Shown in pieces: positions 1-35,712 of a stretch of DNA of 64,000 nt; position 1 is the first letter of the stretch; every line of letters starts with the position of its first letter. The DNA comes from Geosiphon pyriformis uo1 (lineage: Eukaryota; Fungi; Glomeromycota). A program made the position numbers and the translations under genes. The stretch covers positions 1 through 64,000 of the forward strand of contig JAAOMT010000040.1 in the NCBI GenBank assembly GCA_016748015.1. Direction: 5' to 3'. The notes below the pieces were generated by a model, which was not told the DNA's origin, ran no database searches, and saw only the letters and a program-made list of their open reading frames with translations.

Positions 1-125
1 TACAATATTAGACACAAAAAAGTTTTATTAAATATCTTTCCGTAATATGCTAGATAGTGTAAATAAACTACGTTGGGAAATTCGTATATTAGGTTCAAAG
101 TTTGAACACATTTCCTTTTATTAAA

Positions 126-1220
126 TTATAAAGCTCTTTCAAAAAGATTCTCCCCAATAATGTTTTCTAGCCCTTTAAATGGTACGCTACATAAAAAATT
201 TCTTACTATTTCTGTAGTTATTCCCGCGATTTTGATAATTACGCCAAATGGAGTAAAAGTTTCACAGAGACCTGATAATCCAGAAGCTGACCATATCAAT
301 TCTGGAGGCTTTATCATTTTGTGCACTATAATATTGTCGAATTCTTTAAGAACATGAAGGGTTAATTCTTCAACTTTTGGCCCACAGATTACTAAAGTCG
401 CAAAGCATTCATATGGGTCTAATCGATCTTTTAAGTTATTATGCGTTTTGTCTAGATCAATTGATAATATATTATTTATTGAATTTTTTCTATCGGAATA
501 GCGATTATTTGAAAGCAAGACCACATCACGAAAGATTAATCGCTCTCCAAGTAAAATGTCGATGCCTGACTCATACCCAGAAAACTCCCATTTTTCCCCT
601 CGTGACATTCTACCACTAGTGAACCAATCTAAAACCACAAGAGAGGAATTTTTGTCTTCTAGCACAAACCTTTGGCGTTGTTTGAACTCAGCGCTACGAA
701 AACATGTCGTTGGTTCTGGTAGTTGAAGCAACAATGAATTTTGGTGAATTCGAGCATGAAGCGATTGCTGTGTTGTTGTTAATTTCGTTAAAAATGTGGG
801 CGATTCTTTCTGATTCAAGTCGGGAGAAGCAGAAATATAAAACTCAAAATCATTGGTGATAGTTCCTAAAGTATTGTTCCCAGTTGATGCTTCATTTTGT
901 GAATTATGAGCATAGTCATTAGTCAATCCCTGAGCTCTTGGACGACTCTTATATACTTTTGTCGAACCTTGAGTAAGTAGCAGTAAGTTTACGCCTTCCT
1001 TACAGTCGATCTTTACTGATACACTATCACCAGACACTAAGCCTCCTCCATATGTCAAAATATATAAAGCGGCCAAAGAAGGACTGTGAGTGCGTGGTGA
1101 AAGAAATTTTAACGGATACGAAGCGTGTAAAGTAGAGAATACCGGTCGAATTTTGCTGCTGAGTGGAATTTCACAAACAACCTCTCCCTGACCAGGTTTC
1201 AACTTTTGTTGATTTTTCAT
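126..1220 (-). CDS. ureD: Urease accessory protein UreD (fungal Ure4-like), single exon, ~364 aa from the first ATG
   Basis: UreD motifs: YPLKFLSP, YILTYGGGLVSGD, LLTQGSTKVYK, LPEPTTCFRSAEFKQ, DWFTSGRMSRGEKWEF. The ORF track starts at a TTG (1241); the first ATG is at 1220. Confidence 0.92.
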   Translation of the reverse strand: MKNQQKLKPGQGEVVCEIPLSSKIRPVFSTLHASYPLKFLSPRTHSPSLAALYILTYGGGLVSGDSVSVKIDCKEGVNLLLLTQGSTKVYKSRPRAQGLTNDYAHNSQNEASTGNNTLGTITNDFEFYISASPDLNQKESPTFLTKLTTTQQSLHARIHQNSLLLQLPEPTTCFRSAEFKQRQRFVLEDKNSSLVVLDWFTSGRMSRGEKWEFSGYESGIDILLGERLIFRDVVLLSNNRYSDRKNSINNILSIDLDKTHNNLKDRLDPYECFATLVICGPKVEELTLHVLKEFDNIIVHKMIKPPELIWSASGLSGLCETFTPFGVIIKIAGITTEIVRNFLCSVPFKGLENIIGENLFERAL

Positions 1221-1328
1221 GAAAGGCAAATGTTTGTACAATGATCAAAAAATTGCACATTGAAATTGTAAAGATCGGCCAATTGGAAACGCGTCGCAAC
1301 TTCGAAACGCTCTTGAATAATTACAAAA
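1221..1328. promoter_or_regulatory. 108-bp bidirectional promoter between ureD and MCMBP, with an MCB-like ACGCGT and a CCAATTGG palindrome
   Basis: Divergent ATGs at 1220 (-) and 1329 (+). ACGCGT at 1289-1294; CCAATTGG at 1279-1286. Confidence 0.55.
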
Positions 1329-4148
1329 ATGTATACTATTAAAGATTATGTAGAAAGACCTCTCGACGTAGTCAAGAAACTTTTTGGTAAAGCTAAATGA
1401 TACTCAGAAGTTCAATTTAATAATCAGGTTTTAACATAAAATACTTGGCTTTAGAGGCCAATTGGAGCCCGATAATACCCGCCAGTGGTAGCCACTTTGG
1501 CATTCCTACGAACTTCAAGCAAGTATTCGATACCGAGGAAGCTATTCAACAGGTTTTATACTCTAAGATTGAAGCTGAATTAGTTGTTTCAAAATGAAAA
1601 CCAGAAAGTCAAACATGCATCCTAGATTCCCTCACTAAATGACATAGCAGCGCGAGACATCCCTTCAAATACACTTGTAAGGTTTCGCGCCATGATCCAA
1701 AATTCTGGGTTAGGTCACGAGATTTATGTAAGCGTATTTGAATCGTTGTGTACTAATGGCAATCAGGTATTTCATTCTTTAATCTATTAGCTGTCAGGCT
1801 ATACCTTGCGAAAAGCGAGTGTAATAACTGATCTTTAATTTTAAGCAATGGAATTTGCACAAATACAGCGACGATATTGATCAGGTAATACCATTTTCTG
1901 CCGATATTTATTTTCAAGAATCTTCATATCTTATCTAAATTCTAGGCGAGCCTCCTTAGTCCAGTTTATGATTCTGCAGAGAGCGTATTCGACGAGCGTC
2001 ATCTGTATTATTGTGTATCAGTACCGGGTGAAACTAACTGGGTGAAAGAAATATCCTTAATGAATATATACCACGATTTCTAAGGAAATTTATTTTTATG
2101 ATCCATTCAAAGTTTTCTTGATTCTCTTATACGGATATACAGATATAAATTTATCTCGGCCAAAGAAAAACATATTGAATGTTCGAGGTCTGAACTCTAA
2201 TAAATTATATATATATGTATATATTTTACATTAATATTGATATTTTTTTGTAGACCTTGAACTTTTAACTTCCAATCTATCTATCGATGAAGAGTACCAT
2301 GACGAACACATAATGTCGAAATTTCCATTTCCCAATGAAACTCATGTTTCCGCGATTGTGAAGGTCCAATAACATCCACTTCTGCTACATAACCCAATTT
2401 AGTCTTTTTTTTCTGTTTTATGGTTAAAATGAATACATTTTCAGGTTTACGAAAAAGACGAGTCTTTGAAAGTGTGTGATGTGGTGGAGTTCATTGGCGT
2501 GATTGATCATCCTAGGTTTCCTTTTTTTTTTAAAGTTTCTTTGGATTTAAATCTTTATTGCGTCTTATATGATATTTTTTTATTAGCCAATATCAAGAAG
2601 TATTGGATAATGGTGATTTCATTGAGCCAATCTCGCTTCTACCGGCTCCCCGCATCCACGCAATCTTTTACAGAAAACTACACCATTCCAACAATCCATT
2701 GATCTCATTTTCAAATCTGGATGCCAGTTTGTATTCAAAAGAATGGCAACTCATTTATTGAATCTGAATTATGCTAAATATTATATTTGAATATTGATCA
2801 GCAATCCATCAGGTCAAACAGGCAGCGAAGCTCACCAGAATTGCATTGATAAAGTATATTGCTTCAGCCTTCAAAGAGGACTTGCTAGTAGCTGAGTTTG
2901 TCTTACTTCAACTTCTTTCCCGAACGTAAGAATGGTTTCCCAATGACTTTGTATCAACATATTTCGGACATTTTCATGATTTTTTACTCGACATTACAGT
3001 TATAATCGCCGAGAGGATATAACACTAGGAAAATTTGGCTTAAATATTACAAATATACCACCAGCTAAATTCTCAAATAATGACAGCTTGTCCTCTCGTC
3101 CAATATCATTGACCCACAGTAATCCATTCGCTAGAAATATTGGCACTCTACTTTCTTCACTTTTACCAAAATACCATGATCTTCCCCTAAATCTTTCTAC
3201 GCTTAACAATATTTTTTTCTATCCACAATGCGAGGACGTTTTGCAATCTGGAGTATTCCAAGTCAGTGAAGGAACTTGTTTTTCTATAGATGAGACTGTA
3301 TTAAATGAAGGAAAATTAGGTGATCAGGGTAAGTTCATATTAGAATGGATAATTTACTTCCGATAAGTTATTAAAAAGCTCCACATTTTTTGATTTCCTC
3401 TAGGTGTGCGAAATGCTCAGGTTTTGGCACAAGTTTTAAGGAATCAAAAGTTAAATTACGTGTTTCCATTCAGCAATTTTGAATTCAATATTGATATCGG
3501 GTTAATTATATTGTCGAACGCTAAAAGCCTTTTCCCCGTAAATATTCTAATATTTTCGTTTTTATCGATGTCAAAGATTATATGTTCAACGATCGTAATA
3601 ACTTTGCTTACCTTCTAGGCTGACTGTGCCATTCCTCTTGATCATTCAATGGGAATAAATACAACGCCGTCTCCAAGCCCAGACACTATGAATAACTTTA
3701 GGAAATATTTGAGTATCATGCGTCATTCAGAGTATTTAATTCCTGAGAATATCGCTGAGGCAATGATCATTTTCTTAATTTTGAAATTTCAAAGAAAACT
3801 CGCTCCCAATAATTTTCCCAAAATTTTTTGCAGTTTATTCAACGTCAATTTGTTAGTCAACGACAAGAAGCATCTCGGGAAGGTACCCCTTTAATGACTC
3901 CTGAGGATTTATTTTTCCGAATGAACCTAGCAAGGCACGTAAATCATTATTGTAAATCCTCGAATGACATTGACATGGTATTTTATAATCACTCATTTAC
4001 TGATTTGGTTTATCGAATTGCTCACAGATTGGTTACTTTAAGCTTCGGTGAAGTAGAACTAACAACGGAGTTGTGGAATTATACCCAAAAGTTGGATCGA
4101 GCCCGTCAACAGCGAATTGAACAGATTGGGCTAGCACCTACGGAATAA
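1329..4148 (+). CDS. MCMBP: Mini-chromosome maintenance complex-binding protein (MCMBP/Mcb1 family), ~15 exons
   Basis: Hand-spliced exons read MYTIKDYVERPLDVVKKLF..IPSLND..LVRFRAMIQ..YYCVSVPGETNWVKE|GY..FPFPNETHVSAIVKVY..LKVCDVVEFIGVI..DLLVAEFVLLQLLSR..LQSGVFQVSEGT..IDETVLNEGKLGDQGVRN..QKLNYVFPF..FVSQRQ..LARLVTLSFG, matching the family. There are 14 introns: 11 GT-AG, 2 GC-AG and 1 AT-AC. Confidence 0.9.
2051..2132 (+). other. U12-type (minor spliceosome) AT-AC intron in MCMBP
   Basis: 5' end ATATCCTT; branch-like TTTCTTGAT at 2114-2122; ends ...TTATAC. Removal joins WVKE|GYT in frame, while retention gives an in-frame TAA. Confidence 0.88.
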
Positions 4149-4471
4149 AGTAGCAAAACTTTTGTCCATTTTGTCTGAAATTCTAAATCAAGCATAAAAG
4201 TACAAATTAAGCTTAACTGAAACAGTTTAAAGATCCAAATAGTTAATTAAAGTAATGCAAAAGTGCTATTATCGGCTAATACAAAGTGCAAATTGATATG
4301 GATAATTTATCATGGTTGCAGGTCGCCGTTTAGTTGAGAAAATTTCTGTCGGCAGTTGAATATAGCATAGGCCTGCTAATATTTAATAGATACCGATGGG
4401 GGCTAAACTATCTAGGCGTTTTTCAAAGTAGTTCTCAAACAAAAATCGTCCTCCATTTTTAGGAATTATTT

Positions 4472-6860
4472 TCAAGCTTTCCATAATTTTATAGACAGAA
4501 TTCCTGCAATCAATGCCATTAACCCTCCAAATCTGAGCACAAACCCAATAGCATCCTTATTCGAATTTACATCAACTTCATCAACAAGACTTTTTTCAGA
4601 TCCAGGTTCTATTATGGCAAACACAACGCTACTGAAAAAAGTAACCAAAAATTGAGGTAGCACTATATAAATGTTGTGTATACCCAGTAATGTGCCAGCA
4701 TCGCATGAGATTTGACTTGAATCGTAATCTCCTGTGAATGATACTAAATGTTCTTCACTTTGTATATTAGTTGTTTCGACTAATCCATAAGAAATCTCAT
4801 CAGGTTCCACAACTTCGTTGTTGCATTGCAGTGATCCAGTCCCCAACTGGCGAGAATTTTTAGCTATAAATTCACCTAAAAGGGAAAAAGGTGCCCACAT
4901 TGCAGTTGCCCATGATATTCCCAGAATCCCATATAAGAATGTTGCTTCGGCAACTGTGTTCGTAAACCATGTTCCTAACATTACAAATGCTACAATAAAG
5001 TGAGAAAGGGTCCACATCTTTGGTAAAGTGAGAAAAGGCAGCGGTAATCTTAGATTCTCCCAATTAAAGTGTGAACGATTGGTACAAGTGAACTTTGTGT
5101 CCCCCGATGGACTGATGATGAAAGGTAACAGAAAGGATGCCATCAAACTGACCAAAGAATGAACTAATAGCGCAAAAGAGCCCGCTCGAGTTCCTACTTC
5201 TGAAGATGGTTTTCCTACAGTACGAGTGTAAACTTCAGCGACCCAAGTTGTAGAGTAAATTAGAAAAGGAAACCATCCAATCCATGCAAAAAATTGTACA
5301 TTGCAGATGTTTTGCACGGGTTCTGGAAGGTTTCGAATGGATTTTACAACAGAAGTTATTGTTTCAAATGTGTAAGAAAGGACGCTGATCGACTCCTTTT
5401 GACTGAGAAAATAAACTTATTGTTATTTAATCGCAAAATGATATATATATCAAATTGGAATATTTTAATTTCAAACCTGCCATCATAATTCACTTTTTCC
5501 TTGACGGCCCACCAAGTGAGCGCGTTACAAGATAGTAAAACAAGAGAGGCGAGAATGCATAAAACTTTCAAATTTGTATTGCCAAAAAATGGAAAGATTG
5601 CCGGTAATTCGACAAAGCCCCTTTTTTAATTGAATTTGCACCAAAAATTATTAAGATCTTCATAATAGGTAAAATACAAAGTCCTTTCCTCACATGAAAT
5701 ATCCCATAGCACTTCCAATTACACCCATTTTTCCAGCCCAAGCTGTCCCCTCTTCCTGTTGTGATGGCGGCAAACAGTCGACAATTAAAGCACGAGAGGT
5801 TGCTTGAACTTTGAATGTATTTTATGAGTGATATATTCATCCTGATATATTTGAAGGAGAATTTATTAAATACCTATGTTGATCGCGAAATCCAAGACGT
5901 AGATAGATATTACGGCCAACCAAATTGTCAATGTGCTCTAAAATCAGAAGTATTAATATAAAAACAATTTGAGAAGCTAGTTGAAATCGTATTTCTTACC
6001 GCAAAAGAATTTTCTCCGAAAATTCCAAAAATAATTTCTTTGGTCCAACCAATCAATATGAGTATAAATGCTACCACCAGACTACCGACAATCATGAAAG
6101 GCCGCCGACGACCATATTGCGAATTAGATTTATCTGAAAGCACCCCCACTATTGGCTGCATTATTAGACCTTTGATAAATCAATATAAATATCAAAGATT
6201 TTTATATAAATATCAAACCCAAAGTAGAAATTGAGAATATTTACCTGAAAGCGGTCCAGCAAGCCATACCAAAGAAGTTAGAGCTTTTGATAGGCCTAAG
6301 CTAAGTAGGTAAGGCGTACCTAGTTTTCAGGAGGATTACTGATTATGGTGGGAGAACTATGAGAAAGATATGGAAAAATAAAACTTTCGGACAGACCATA
6401 AGCTAATTCTACGGACCCTAATAGTATTCAATTATGAATTTTGATCAGGAATTCGAAAGAACCATGAAATCAACGAACTTTAAAATGATAAACTTACAAG
6501 TAAACGACACACTAGATGAAAAAAAAATTATTTATATAAAATATATACCTCAATGTGATTTTTTGTAAATGGCACAATGTTTAGTTGAAAAATAGGAACC
6601 CAAACTTTGAAGATCTTTCAGCCCAACATAGTCTCATAAACTCACCCCAGTAGGAACGACGTCAATAAAATCAATTTTACAGTTTTATTGTTTCCTTTTA
6701 TTGAGCCAAGGGGGCTTTTTCCTTCTAGTTGTTGGAAATGAGTATTGGCGCTTTCTTGAGCGTTGAGATTAATATGCTCTTGATCCAGACCAGCTATATC
6801 ATTGTAGGAAAGTTTAGCAGAATTAGAAGAAATGGAGGAACGTGGTGAAAGACTTTGCAT
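4472..6860 (-). CDS. MFS sucrose/general alpha-glucoside:H+ symporter (SUT1/SUC/SLC45-like), multi-exon
   Basis: Spliced motifs GVSFTWSVELAYGTPYLLSLGLSK..VWLAGPLSG..QPIVGVLSD..YGRRRPFM..YVLDFAINIVQATSRALIVD..CNVQFFAWIGWFPFLIYSTTWV..AGTLLGIHNIYIVLPQF. Introns are GT-AG, with microexons of 14 and 21 nt. Confidence 0.88.
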
Positions 6861-14700: not shown

Positions 14701-15254
14701 TTTTCTATAAATACAAAAAAATACTATTACATTTAGTTATAGAAAATATAACAGCAAACCAATTAAAAAAAATAATTAATTTACAATTTAAAATACTAAA
14801 AACAGAAGTTTTCAAGACAATAATAAAAAAAAGTATACAAATTTATTTAATAAAAAAACTTAAAAGATTTTAATAGAGCTTAATATTAAAAAAAAGAAAT
14901 AATATTATTCATAAAAAATAATAATAATATAAATAACCAATAGTAAAATAAAGATTATTAAAATACATAATACTAAGAATTTCAAAAATTTTAAAAATTA
15001 CAGAAATATTGGCAAAAATACTAGGAATTTTAGCAATAATTTAAAAAAATTGTAAGAATTTCAGGAATTTTGTATTATGAAAATTTATGTATATATATTA
15101 ATTAATAAGTCAAGAAAAAAAAGAACAAACTCAACTTTAAGATAAGTTCAATTTTAAGATTAATTTAGCTATTTTTAATTTTATTAACAATTACAAATTT
15201 ATTAACTTATTAATAAACTTTTATCATATTTATTACTTAAATAATTTCAAGATT

Positions 15255-18200
15255 TTTTTTTTTTTATTACATTTAATGAGTGAAATTCAAACGCTACCTA
15301 GAACTATACATCATACAAATAATTTAAACTAGGTATGAATCATGCATTTTTTACATGTGACCAGCCATTCAAGCCAATCAGAACAACACTATACATTTAT
15401 ATAAACAGAAACTATATCACTTATACCAGAAAAAAACTGACAATATTTACAAAACCCAAAACTAACACCAAAAGCATTAGTGATATCTAATAACTTAACC
15501 ATACTATCTGAAAGTAGCTTAGGGGGGCCTACCACTAAAAGAAATAGAGAACTATTACATGGAATTGAACCATTTCCCTCCATAAGAGACCTGTGTTTGG
15601 CACAAACCAATTAAACCTCTTTCCGAAAAGTGAGACAAAATTTTCACACAAAGTTCATGATGGTCAGAGCTGCCACCTTGGAATCTTTAAAAACAGAAAG
15701 TGACTCATGATACCAATCATTAAAAACAAAACCTTTATAAAGAGCTGTGCTAATCACTACATCAGAAACACATATTGACAACAACTGTAAGACACATAAG
15801 AAGGAATGAGATAAACCAGTGTAATTTTCCCAAGCAGAAACATCAGATGGGCAGGAAAACATGTGGTCGGAAACCTTAACATTACCACAATAAAGACATA
15901 TTATGCTGGGATAGCACCTATTATACAACCGTTTCCATACAGCTATAGGAAGCTGATAATGCAGTGTCTTCATAAAATATGTCTAATTGTTAGCAGTACA
16001 CTTACTAGTGAAACCAACAGCCAAATGAGAATCCGGATGTTACACCAAAGAAGACCTGAACCAATCAATATCCAAACGCAAGCTTCCCATTATAACCTGA
16101 AAGCCTAAACTCATCTCCCAATGTGCATGATGAACTGATTGGAAAATGTCATGGACAAAATGTCTAGAATTACCAGATACCACAGTACCACCAGCCACTA
16201 AAACCCGCTCACTGATTGAAGGAGGTAGGTGAAAGTCAGAAAAAGCAGCAACTTTAGCTAAAGCATCAGCACGCTTATTGTCCAACATGCCAAAATAATC
16301 TTTGACTTTAACCCAATTTACATCCAATCTTTTATGACAAATAACATTAGCAATGTGGCAGTGTTTGATCCAACACTGATTCCTGAAATCCAGACAAAGC
16401 AAAACAGATTCTGAAACACACGCATCCAAAGCAGTCTGACTGTCAGAGAACAGGTCAACAGAACTAAGAGAAGGGACACATTTTAGAGCCAAAGCAATGG
16501 CTTGTAATTTGGCTAATGTAGAAGAGACCAAGCCAGACACATTCACACCCAAACCTAAATTAAGGTCTTCAAAAAACACTGCCGCACCAGCTTTCATATC
16601 AAGAGTTCCCAGCCCACACAAGGAACTATTTGTATACACAGAAAGATGAGAAGATGTAGTATTCAACAGATTGGAACTGACCACACCAAACTCACAGGAC
16701 TGAAGAACGTCATGATGCATACAGCCATCCAAGAATAGGAAACCAACAGAAGAAGAGGCCATATTAGCAATAAAGTGAATGGCAATACCATACCAAATGG
16801 AACAGGACTGCAGGGGTCCAATCTTTTTCACCATTTGAAGGTTGACCAACTAAAAACAGCACTATTATGATCTTGAAGCTGTTCCACAAATGCAACACCA
16901 TACCAGTGGAGTGAGGAAACACACCTGAAAAATGTCTTATTACCAAGCACAAAAGAAAAAGGAGTACCAGACTGAAGGTGAAATGTACTGGCCACCGAGC
17001 TGCCTAAGGACAAATTGTAATCAGAAAAAACACGGACCACACCAGCCAAAAAATTATTTGAAGAGTCAACTCTAATACAAGATGGGAATACCAATAGATG
17101 GCAAGGGCACCAGCTGAGAACCTGAAGATTGTGGCATTGGTGTGCAAACAACTGACCCAAAACACCAACTGAATTCGCAAAAAAAACAATGGAAGCCAAC
17201 TTACTCTCAGCCTGAACCTGTTCAAATGTTTTCAAACTGTACAAAGAAGGGTAGTACAGTGCATCATTGAGAAAATTAAGTGGCAGACCAGACTTAGATT
17301 TCAAACCCTTGTGAATGAGAGCATTCTATTTGTTACACACACTGATAGAAACAAAACTGAACTGAGTCCTGTAACTGATGATGAAAACAAAAACTGCTGA
17401 CACCAAATATGCAAATTGTTTATCTGAAATCACTTTTCTTAAGACAATATTGGTAAAAAACCAAATATCTGAATGCGCCTTAACCAAGCTAGGCCTAGAT
17501 AAACCTTTAGAAGATAGGAAGATTCCCAAATAGCAATGAGGTTCCCCCTTTTTAGCAACAGAGATAGGCAAACCACTGATATTAAGAGCAGGATTCGCTA
17601 CCCGGCAGTTAATAGGGATGACCACAGTCTTCTCATTATTTATCGAAATGTCATTAATTCTAAAGAAATCACTAGCAATATTAAGGATGTGTTGAGTAGC
17701 TGACTGGCTATTGCCAACCCAAATCGTATTATCAACAAAAGCACCAGCAGCCAGAAATGATGTCAGTCCAGCTTAAGATTCTATTTGGCCAGCTTTGGAA
17801 ACAAAATGAAAATTCAATCTATAGCCACACACAGACTCTTGTTTTTTGACTTCACAAAGAAGCGGATCATAAAATATGTACCAAAAAAGTGGAGAGAAAA
17901 CCTCCTCTTGGTCCAAGCCATCATGCATGTAATACCCATCTGTCAAACTGAAATTTGTCATCACCCTGTTAGTGTGATCATTGTGAATGGAGCCAAAAAA
18001 CCTAATAAAGCTGTCACACATCTTGATTCTAACTAAACTCCCTCTAAGATGCTCCCAACCAACAGAATTATAGGCTTTGTGCATGTCCTGCAAAACCAAT
18101 CATAGTTCTCAATTTTTCTCCAAGGCATCCTTAATTACAGAACCAATAGCAAAGATCGAAGACTGTGTAGTTGTACTTTTCAAAACAGAAAAATTGTTCC

Positions 18201-21200
18201 CACGCAAGATGTCAAACTCACTACAAGCCAATGAAATCTTATCTAAAAGAATTTTGAAAAAAACCTTGCAGGCTGTCTCAATCAAAGCAATAGGACAGGT
18301 ATTCATAAGAACACCTTCTCATTCATAGGATTTAAGAATCATGGAAACCCAAGCTTCCCTTCAAGGCCCAGGGACCAACTCACAGACCAAACAACAATTC
18401 AGAAACACCAAAACCATATCCAAAACTAATTTATTGCAGTGTTTCCACAACTCATTAGATATATCAGAAAGACCAGCCGCCTTCCCATCAGGTAAATTTA
18501 AAATGACCACCAACATCTCATCGAAATCAATTGGACTCATTACACTGGCAAAAGCTTCATCAAAAACGTAATCCAGAGGCTGATATTAGTGAACCCAATC
18601 ACTAGAGATATCAGAAATCACCTCATGCTTCTGCATTCAGCCCTCCATAATCTCATCTACCTTAGACTTAACCAACATGGGTTCCAAGACCAATTCGTCA
18701 CTAACCATAATATAGTCCAATACAACTTTGTGAAAAGGATGCTTTAATACACTTCTGATTGTATAATCTTTGTCTGACTCAAAACTTTCCATTCGCCTGG
18801 TAATAGCCTGTTTGATCTGAGACTCCTCCGCATGCTTGGATTCCATAAGCTTGAAAGAATGATAAGACTTTTTCACCTTAGCCAGCAAAAAATAAATGAC
18901 ATCAAAACTAGCACCTGAGAAAAAGATTGATTTTGTTGCTGCAGCACTGATTGGGTTGAGACTGTCCCACACACTTAAAAGCAAAGCAAATTCATTACTA
19001 GACACCGAACGAGAAGCCTTCACCAGCTTGGAAACCAGCAGTTCCAACTTATGAAACCTAGAAGACTCTTTAGTATAAACACTATCATAATCTTTGAACC
19101 ACTTTTTTTTGAATGTACCACCAGCAGAAAGAACCACAACCTTACGAATAACATCCCACATTGAATCTAGATCTGAAGAGCTCTTAGCTGCAGCAAACTT
19201 ATTTGAAAACACAGACACATTAGCAGTTGTCAAAATTTTGAAATCCAGCCACTTCAAATCAGTAATGTTCCTGACATTGAATTTCCAACAATTTTTGTTT
19301 GCCTGCTTGCACAAAGAGGAGAGCTGCATATTCAACAAGCCACCCAAATCTGCGGAAATTGATACAGCTTTGTAATCAGTATCAAAGAATTCATCAACAT
19401 TAACCATGCTACGATCCACTATTGCATTGACCAAACCAGAAGAGACAAACATGTAATCGATCATTTTAGAGACATCATAAGAATTGCACCATATAGACAA
19501 ATTTGTAAACAAGCTCCCATTCAAAGCATTGACCAAGCCCAGATTGAAACACTTTCTGAAACTAGCACACCTATGAGAACTATCCTCATTAAAATTGCCA
19601 CCAAGAATAACAAAAAATGATTTGTTCACAGCTCTTGCTATAAAAGAATTGACATCAGCAGCCTGAAAAAACTGTGTTGCCGAAGAAGCACCAGCATACA
19701 GACCCAAAACAGACACAGAGATTTTATTCCTAAAAAGTAGTTTGATGGATATAAGCCAATCAGGGATCTCAGAAACCTTATACACATGCTTTGACAAAGA
19801 TTCATTTAGAACAATTGCCACACCCGAGCCAAGATGACCAGAGTCCACACCAGAAATGAACACATGAACACCAGGAAATTTGTTGGCTATTCAAGGGTAA
19901 ACCCGCCTCTTAAGTTTAGTCTCAGTACAAATAGAAATCGAATTGTTCACACTCCTGTGCCAGCATATAATGTCTTCTTGCTTCACTGAATTGTTCATGC
20001 CTCTAACATTACACATGGCTATATTCCATACTAAATCATTCATTGAGATACAGAAAAGACTGCAGAACCTGAGCCAGCACACATCTGATCTAACTTCTCC
20101 AATACTGAACAAACCGAAGCTTTAAGAGCCATCAACTTCAACTCCAAACAGCCCACTTTTGAAGTCAAAATTTTTGAACTACTTGGACCCAAACTCGAGA
20201 CACCAGAGGAAACCAAAGAGGGAGGAAGAACCACAGACTTAGGTTCATCCAGAACCATATCCAAACCAAATTCCATATTTGCTGTAATAGAGACAACCAA
20301 GGACTGAGAAGAGGAGACAAGAGCCAAGGGCACCAGGTTTAAATTGTTAAGTTTGTCTATAATACCAGACACCTTATTCATGAGAAGTTCCAAAGAATGC
20401 TCCAAAGAAGTGAGACAAGTTTTCAAAAGTGAATTAACAGGACCTGCAGGAGACAAGTGACCAACCACATCTGAGGCACCAGAAAAAGAGCCAAAACCAG
20501 GACCAAAACCAAAATGAGGACTATTAGACAAAGATACTAGAGAGACAACTTGGGTCCATGATTTGCTGTCAAATGCAGCTGGTCTAAAAATAGGCATATT
20601 CTTTTTTACATACAGCTTGGCCAACTGGAGGTGGTTCTCATCAGAGACAACCCTTTTAAATGACTTAGAAAGTTTAGGAGAAGTTGAGGTCTCAGCATCA
20701 CACTCTAAAACAGAATGATCAAGTTTCCCACACTGTTCACACCAAACCATGTCCAATCTAGCCCAAGACAGTTTCACCCCACCAAAAATAGGCTCTGTAC
20801 AAAACACAGATTCCAATACCTTGTCATTCTCAAAACAAACCACAGCACAATAAACCCTATTGCCAGTGTCTAAGGATCAATTTATGACACAAGTTTTCTC
20901 ACCAGCTCCTGCCAAAAGATCACCAAGATTATGAGCCATTGTTTCTACTGGCAACGTAAACAAAAGCGCCCTATACCAATCTTTAGATGCCCATGTCTTA
21001 TGATCCCTCACAGCTTTGGCCATGCACACTAAATTTTTCCCGATTAAGAATGACCACTTAGCTGCCAACTAATTTGTCTGACTCAATTCAGCAAACTCCA
21101 CCACAGCCTTCTGCCACAGCCCAATGAGTTGTAATCAGATTGACACCACTTGACCAAACTCAGATACTGCGGCGATGATCATTTCTTTTGGCATATCCAT

Positions 21201-29160: not shown

Positions 29161-35712
<6,552 letters not shown>

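Follow-up and report, generated by a model that had tools for sequence, protein, structure and literature searches.

The window (the whole 64,000-nucleotide stretch of DNA that was analysed) comes from a glomeromycotan-type fungus and carries its single MCMBP gene, which is almost certainly interrupted by a genuine U12-type AT-AC intron, in phase 0, at positions 2051-2132. The gene and the features which bear on this reading are as follows.

1329-4148, plus strand: gene for MCMBP (MCM-binding protein, PF09739), 15 coding exons, 1767 nt, 588 codons
1329-1386, 1455-1552, 1626-1766, 1846-1884, 1946-2050, plus strand: MCMBP exons 1-5
2133-2187, 2254-2363, 2445-2515, 2587-2726, 2802-2925, plus strand: MCMBP exons 6-10
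3000-3328, 3404-3537, 3619-3759, 3834-3934, 4028-4148, plus strand: MCMBP exons 11-15
1946-2050, plus strand: exon 5, which ends ...PGETNWVKE, the last conserved block preceding the AT-AC intron
2051-2132, plus strand: AT-AC intron assigned to the U12 type, 82 nt, phase 0; cDNA joint 2050->2133
2051-2058, plus strand: U12-type 5' splice site ATATCCTT, by direct reading; full RTATCCTT consensus
2115-2122, plus strand: branch-point sequence TTCTTGAT, differing from TCCTTRAY at one position; presumed branch A at 2121
2133-2187, plus strand: exon 6 (GYTDINLSRPKKNILNVR), a variable linker; 55-nt piece obtained by arithmetic on the cDNA-contig record, with the frame checked
1519-1604, plus strand: alternative GC-AG intron; joint 1518->1605 in the cDNA contig
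3760-3833, plus strand: GC-AG intron 13; joint 3757->3832 with 2 nt of ambiguity, canonical ends only at the +2 reading
3935-4027, plus strand: GC-AG intron 14; joint 3932->4026 (2-nt ambiguity), in frame only when read at +2, GC..AG
4149-4217, plus strand: 3' UTR to the poly(A) addition site; 25 A's as a loose end after 4217 in the cDNA contig

For the Pfam search of the gene the exons were queried singly, not joined, and continuity of the frame was followed by phase arithmetic. Eleven exon pieces match PF09739 (MCM_bind) colinearly, from profile positions 14-58 through 548-577 of 577; the segments are, in order, 14-58, 81-108, 203-223, 255-273, 285-321, 323-417, 421-463, 466-516 and 548-577. 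Positions 1626-1766 correspond to segment 14-58, 3001-3327 to 323-417 and 4029-4145 to 548-577. In exon 5, segment 81-108 aligns with residues 8-35, reaching the final residue of the exon. By the same arithmetic the 15-exon model has zero internal stops. Searched without a profile, exon 11 recovers 93 family members, full-length ones among them, and the length of 588 codons matches the relatives of 576-602 aa found in this way. Over exon 11, identity with the R. clarus cluster is just 53%. Representative MCMBP proteins show the family motif YC.S.PGE..W... Most junctions of the model are supported by the cDNA contig described below; introns 2, 11 and 12 come from homology. Intron 2 is a GT-AG intron at 1553-1625, where the homologues require FKQVFDTEEAIQQ/IPSLND (here and below, a slash in a protein reading marks the position of the intron). 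The two constitutive GC-AG introns and the alternative one, which has a GCAAGT donor, represent an unusually high GC-AG share for one gene.

Positions 1-6154 of the window are 100% identical to G000:C679:43527-49680 (6154 nt, an overlap of contig ends). A second or processed copy of MCMBP is ruled out, as the identity includes the introns; C679:43527-49680 is assembly redundancy and not a paralogue. Long ORFs flank the gene on the minus strand at 126-1241 (371 aa) and 4472-5317 (281 aa). The latter converges on the 3' end of MCMBP and has the look of a membrane protein. Further along the window, at approximately 15170-20000, lies a dispersed repeat of about 4.8 kb, which has at least 25 copies in the genome at 70-88% identity and is probably a transposable element.

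The signals of the intron can be read directly. The original prediction, which had been made from the letters of the window, had exon 5 ending in TGG GTG AAA GAA, and the exon does read ...AAC TGG GTG AAA GAA, ending at 2050. The predicted U12 donor is present at 2051, the branch A (2121) sits 11 nt before the terminal AC (2131-2132) as had been proposed, and the following exon was found to start with GGA TAT at 2133. It had also been claimed that the frame is restored as WVKE/GY; the 82 nt of the intron (1 mod 3) supply just the offset that separates the frames of the two exons. Read-through meets the expected stop, a TAA, after 10 codons. The alternative GT(2042)..AG(2142) is out of frame, as stated in the prediction. 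There are further U2-type (GT/GC..AG) choices that keep the frame, such as a donor at 2028 or 2042 with an acceptor at 2084 or 2165; each would remove or exchange conserved residues, and the cDNA contradicts them.

The donor motif alone is not enriched: RTATCCTT is not above chance in the window (4 observed against 6.1 expected). The case therefore rests on context, namely the Pfam match up to the exon end, the frame, the cDNA joint and the recurrence in other genomes. The other RTATCCTT sites, at 34610 (plus), 36919 (minus) and 43488 (plus), were rejected as introns; they lack a nearby branch box plus AC or AG, and they lack a coding context. A search of the window against Rfam matched no RNA family.

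Transcript evidence comes from one small public run (X1), which is automatically labelled 'RNA? (probably DNA)', and from one contig assembled from it. This contig was treated as cDNA because it has a poly(A) tail and joints. It is 1733 nt long and 100% identical to the window save for one SNP, it has 25 A's after 4217, and it contains 12 joints. The check proposed for the 2050/2133 junction could be carried out on this single contig, which joins 2050 directly to 2133 and skips the 82 nt between them, AT..AC. No letters are shared by the two sides of the joint (both=0, side 53), so there is no ambiguity of the boundary, and contig depth within 2051-2132 is zero (bin values being exon fraction x contig depth). 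Nine further introns of the model agree with the contig; the intron at 2188-2253 was derived by arithmetic on the record, its row having been dropped at a repeat. At position 1991 the genome has G and the contig has T (GAC Asp to TAC Tyr); this could reflect variation between alleles or nuclei, or else be an error.

The same contig has irregular parts. The alternative intron at 1519-1604 shifts the frame and leads to a premature stop at 1636-1638. The contig also skips 3296-3611 (316 nt), a non-canonical joint with ends CT..AC, equivalent to GT..AG on the minus strand. This skip takes out the conserved exon 12 (3404-3537), and positions 3380-3607 are covered by no X1 contig; sense and antisense transcripts may have been fused into a chimera here, or the skip may be artefactual. 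The contig proves the 2050/2133 splice, but it is not a clean, fully productive mRNA.

Such irregularities lend something to the suggestion that the 2050/2133 joint was itself created artificially, by reverse transcription or in assembly, and that the cell uses an in-frame GT/GC-AG alternative. In-frame U2-type solutions are available, and public gene models of relatives use solutions of this kind. However, the two sides of the joint show no microhomology, and its position coincides exactly with consensus U12 signals, whereas the alternatives lose the conserved GETNWVKE block or translate the intron. The signals are moreover conserved in three other fungi and in 38 metagenome contigs, while the remainder of the intron diverges. 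An artefact is thus scarcely credible, and the AT-AC intron is retained as the reading of this site.

The position, phase and signals of the AT-AC intron are conserved in four Glomeromycotina genomes; the body of the intron and its length differ. The corresponding sites in the three other genomes read as follows.

L007 (GCA_910591945.1), 2372-2480: WAKK/ATATCCTT...CTCTTGAT, 14 nt, AC/AYKENN; intron of 109 nt
L008 (GCA_003203555.1), 2291-2352: WAKQ/ATATCCTT...TCCTTGAC, 12 nt, AC/VYRQKN; intron of 62 nt
L009 (GCA_910592205.1), 1437-1511: WARK/ATATCCTT...TTCTTAGC, 12-13 nt, AC/GFRSEY; intron of 75 nt

The second of these assemblies, GCA_003203555.1, is Rhizophagus clarus (PMC8298701). In all three loci the AT-AC model rejoins the downstream annotated frame. 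It had been anticipated that gene callers would mis-model this exon, and public annotation bears this out. The three closest full-length proteins depart from the PGE..W... motif exactly at the intron boundary, where they read VSVP/ENNSN (P0001), PGET/QKNRF (P0002) and GESSW/NLHE (P0006); P0006 and P0017 are suspected of being mis-modelled as well. P0005, the public model of L009, translates the donor as protein (ISFSIEEI). P0001, P0002 and P0005 are wrong at the AT-AC site: two of them lack conserved residues, and in the third the first part of the intron is translated. Affected protein sequences carry local errors, and surveys which use annotated introns may undercount minor introns in these fungi.

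The original prediction also held that this organism has a working minor spliceosome. The snRNAs were sought in the window's own 128-Mb assembly, with Rfam cut-offs of 53 for U12, 33 for U6atac, 39 for U11 and 53 for U4atac. U11 (80.9 bits), U6atac (70.9) and U12 (55.1) are present in one copy each, all above these cut-offs. U4atac is present as one full-length copy with 43.7 bits, under its gathering cut-off of 53. Two minor-spliceosome-specific markers were also found, a homologue of PDCD7/59K (35.6 bits) and an SNRNP25-type Ubiquitin_4 domain (44.3 bits). The claim of a minor-spliceosome system is thereby upheld, with three of the snRNAs above cut-off, U4atac full-length below it, and both proteins. 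The recognition boxes are intact in the alignments: the 5' end of U11 (AAAAGGG), the U12 box GUAAGGAU and the U6atac box AAGGAGAGA. The donor ATATCCTT is complementary to both the U11 5' end and the U6atac box of the same genome. As read from the alignment, possible pairing of UUCUUGAU in the intron with the U12 box comprises 4 Watson-Crick and 3 G-U pairs and leaves the A bulged. The weak points of the branch sequence TTCTTGAT are its one consensus mismatch and its reliance on G-U pairs.

An AT-AC intron may be real and yet be removed by the major (U2-type) spliceosome, like the rare U2-type AT-AC introns. It should be noted that AT-AC termini do not suffice to assign an intron to its class, and that dependence on U11/U12 is deduced here from the sequences. 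U2-type AT-AC introns carry ATAAGT-like donors; the donor in this gene, unlike ATAAGT, is the full U12 consensus. It is accompanied by a U12-type branch box 11 nt from the 3' end, both donor and box are conserved in every relative, and the minor snRNAs are present in the genome. Removal by the major spliceosome is accordingly considered exceedingly improbable. We infer that 2051-2132 is removed by the minor rather than the major spliceosome. The U11/U12 di-snRNP would engage the 5' splice site via U11, while U12 would pair with the branch sequence, bulging A2121, 11 nt from the 3' AC. U4atac/U6atac.U5 would enter next, and U6atac would displace U11 at the 5' site. Two transesterifications would then ligate 2050 to 2133, giving ...NWVKE/GYTD...

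Conservation beyond fungi was examined by scanning metagenomes with a degenerate DNA pattern, C-x3-PGE-x2-W-x3 followed by RTATCCTT. As this pattern required a U12 donor, the scan addresses presence of the intron and not its frequency. There are 38 metagenome contigs which carry RTATCCTT exactly at this boundary, with 27 distinct exon ends. All 38 are true MCMBP exons, with homology extending well outside the letters of the pattern. In about 20 of the 38 the AT-AC intron is complete; it measures 312-1371 nt, and CTTAAC lies 11-12 nt before AC. The following exon in these begins AY, TY or VY (e.g. WVKR/AYAEMS), and WVK(R/T)/AY is the reading across the boundary. Those multi-exon contigs that were compared gave their highest scores with the sponge protein P0073 and low ones with glomeromycotan proteins; they are therefore regarded as animal-like. 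Other forms are L025, which reads GTATCCTT...AG followed by AF, L026, an AT-AC form of 80 nt, and L027, which is Rhizophagus-like. A locus search of metagenomes with exon 11 found no relatives, and a word search with the same exon gave no match within the length range covered.

In the sponge Sycon ciliatum (GCA_964019385.1, named as such in PMC12419799) there is an intron at the same codon boundary and in the same phase, WAKQ/AFASQ (L013, 4043-4461). It is U2-type, with the form GTGAGT...polypyrimidine...TAG and a length of 419 nt, and none of the exon boundaries of the Sycon MCMBP gene has a U12-like donor. Four further lineages which were examined (L010, L011, L012 and L014) have no intron at this codon boundary.

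The prediction that the intron occupies an ancient position shared with animals is borne out by the identical boundary in Sycon (U2-type there), the 38 contigs with RTATCCTT and the animal-like scores. The intron is old, shared as an AT-AC intron at one codon boundary by four Glomeromycotina genomes and many animal-like MCMBP genes; a sponge has turned it into a U2-type intron, and several further lineages have lost it. The rival to common descent is that the intron is U12-type but was gained independently at the same site in Glomeromycotina and in animals, to which the four intronless lineages and the U2-type intron of the sponge might point. Loss and U12-to-U2 conversion are, however, the common routes known for minor introns. 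The phase, the codon boundary, the AT-AC subtype and the x[YF] with which the next exon begins are all identical. Minor introns are considered to be gained very rarely and to be mostly ancient (PMC10639083). Independent gain is therefore judged improbable, and an old, shared intron is the preferred reading.

Why such an intron should persist invites speculation. Conceivably, though we hold it to be quite unlikely, the AT-AC intron has been kept for more than 1 billion years, in Glomeromycotina and animals alike, since slow minor splicing limits MCMBP dosage, the unproductive cDNA isoforms being part of the control. If this were true, the supply of an MCM-helicase chaperone, and hence replication licensing, would be coupled to the activity of the minor spliceosome.

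Literature searches on this intron gave little: the position of an MCMBP intron is absent from the supplements of PMC7612377 and PMC10639083, and a search on C10orf119 with U12 found no paper. Minor introns as such are established in this fungal group. Larue & Roy (Nucleic Acids Res 2023, PMC10639083) reported that Rhizophagus irregularis has 205 minor introns, along with the full set of four minor snRNAs. Some of its minor-intron positions are common to animals, and the system has been lost in Ascomycota and Basidiomycota; the survey was built on annotated introns (PMC10639083). The surprise implied in the original prediction was thus overrated, Glomeromycota minor introns and snRNAs having already been published (PMC10639083), and the picture of Larue & Roy 2023 is unchanged by the present finding. 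What the finding provides, outside R. irregularis, is a transcript-backed minor intron from a fungus of the arbuscular-mycorrhiza type. Its added value lies in the conservation of this AT-AC intron between fungus and animal and in the documented annotation errors.

One close comparison is with the minor introns of R. irregularis. They belong to the same fungal group and share the RTATCCTT donor, a TCCTTRAY-like branch box near the 3' end and a genome with four minor snRNAs. The genome is a different one, and the MCMBP intron is in phase 0, which is under-represented in that survey and is the least common phase among minor introns (PMC10639083). Human MCMBP is reported to hold one or more U12-type introns, retained in RNPC3 patients (PMC7612377). 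Here the gene family and the intron class are the same; equivalence of position is suggested by the animal-like contigs with WVK(R/T)/AY. With the MCMBP intron of Sycon ciliatum the codon boundary and phase are identical, whereas the sponge intron is U2-type and measures 419 nt.
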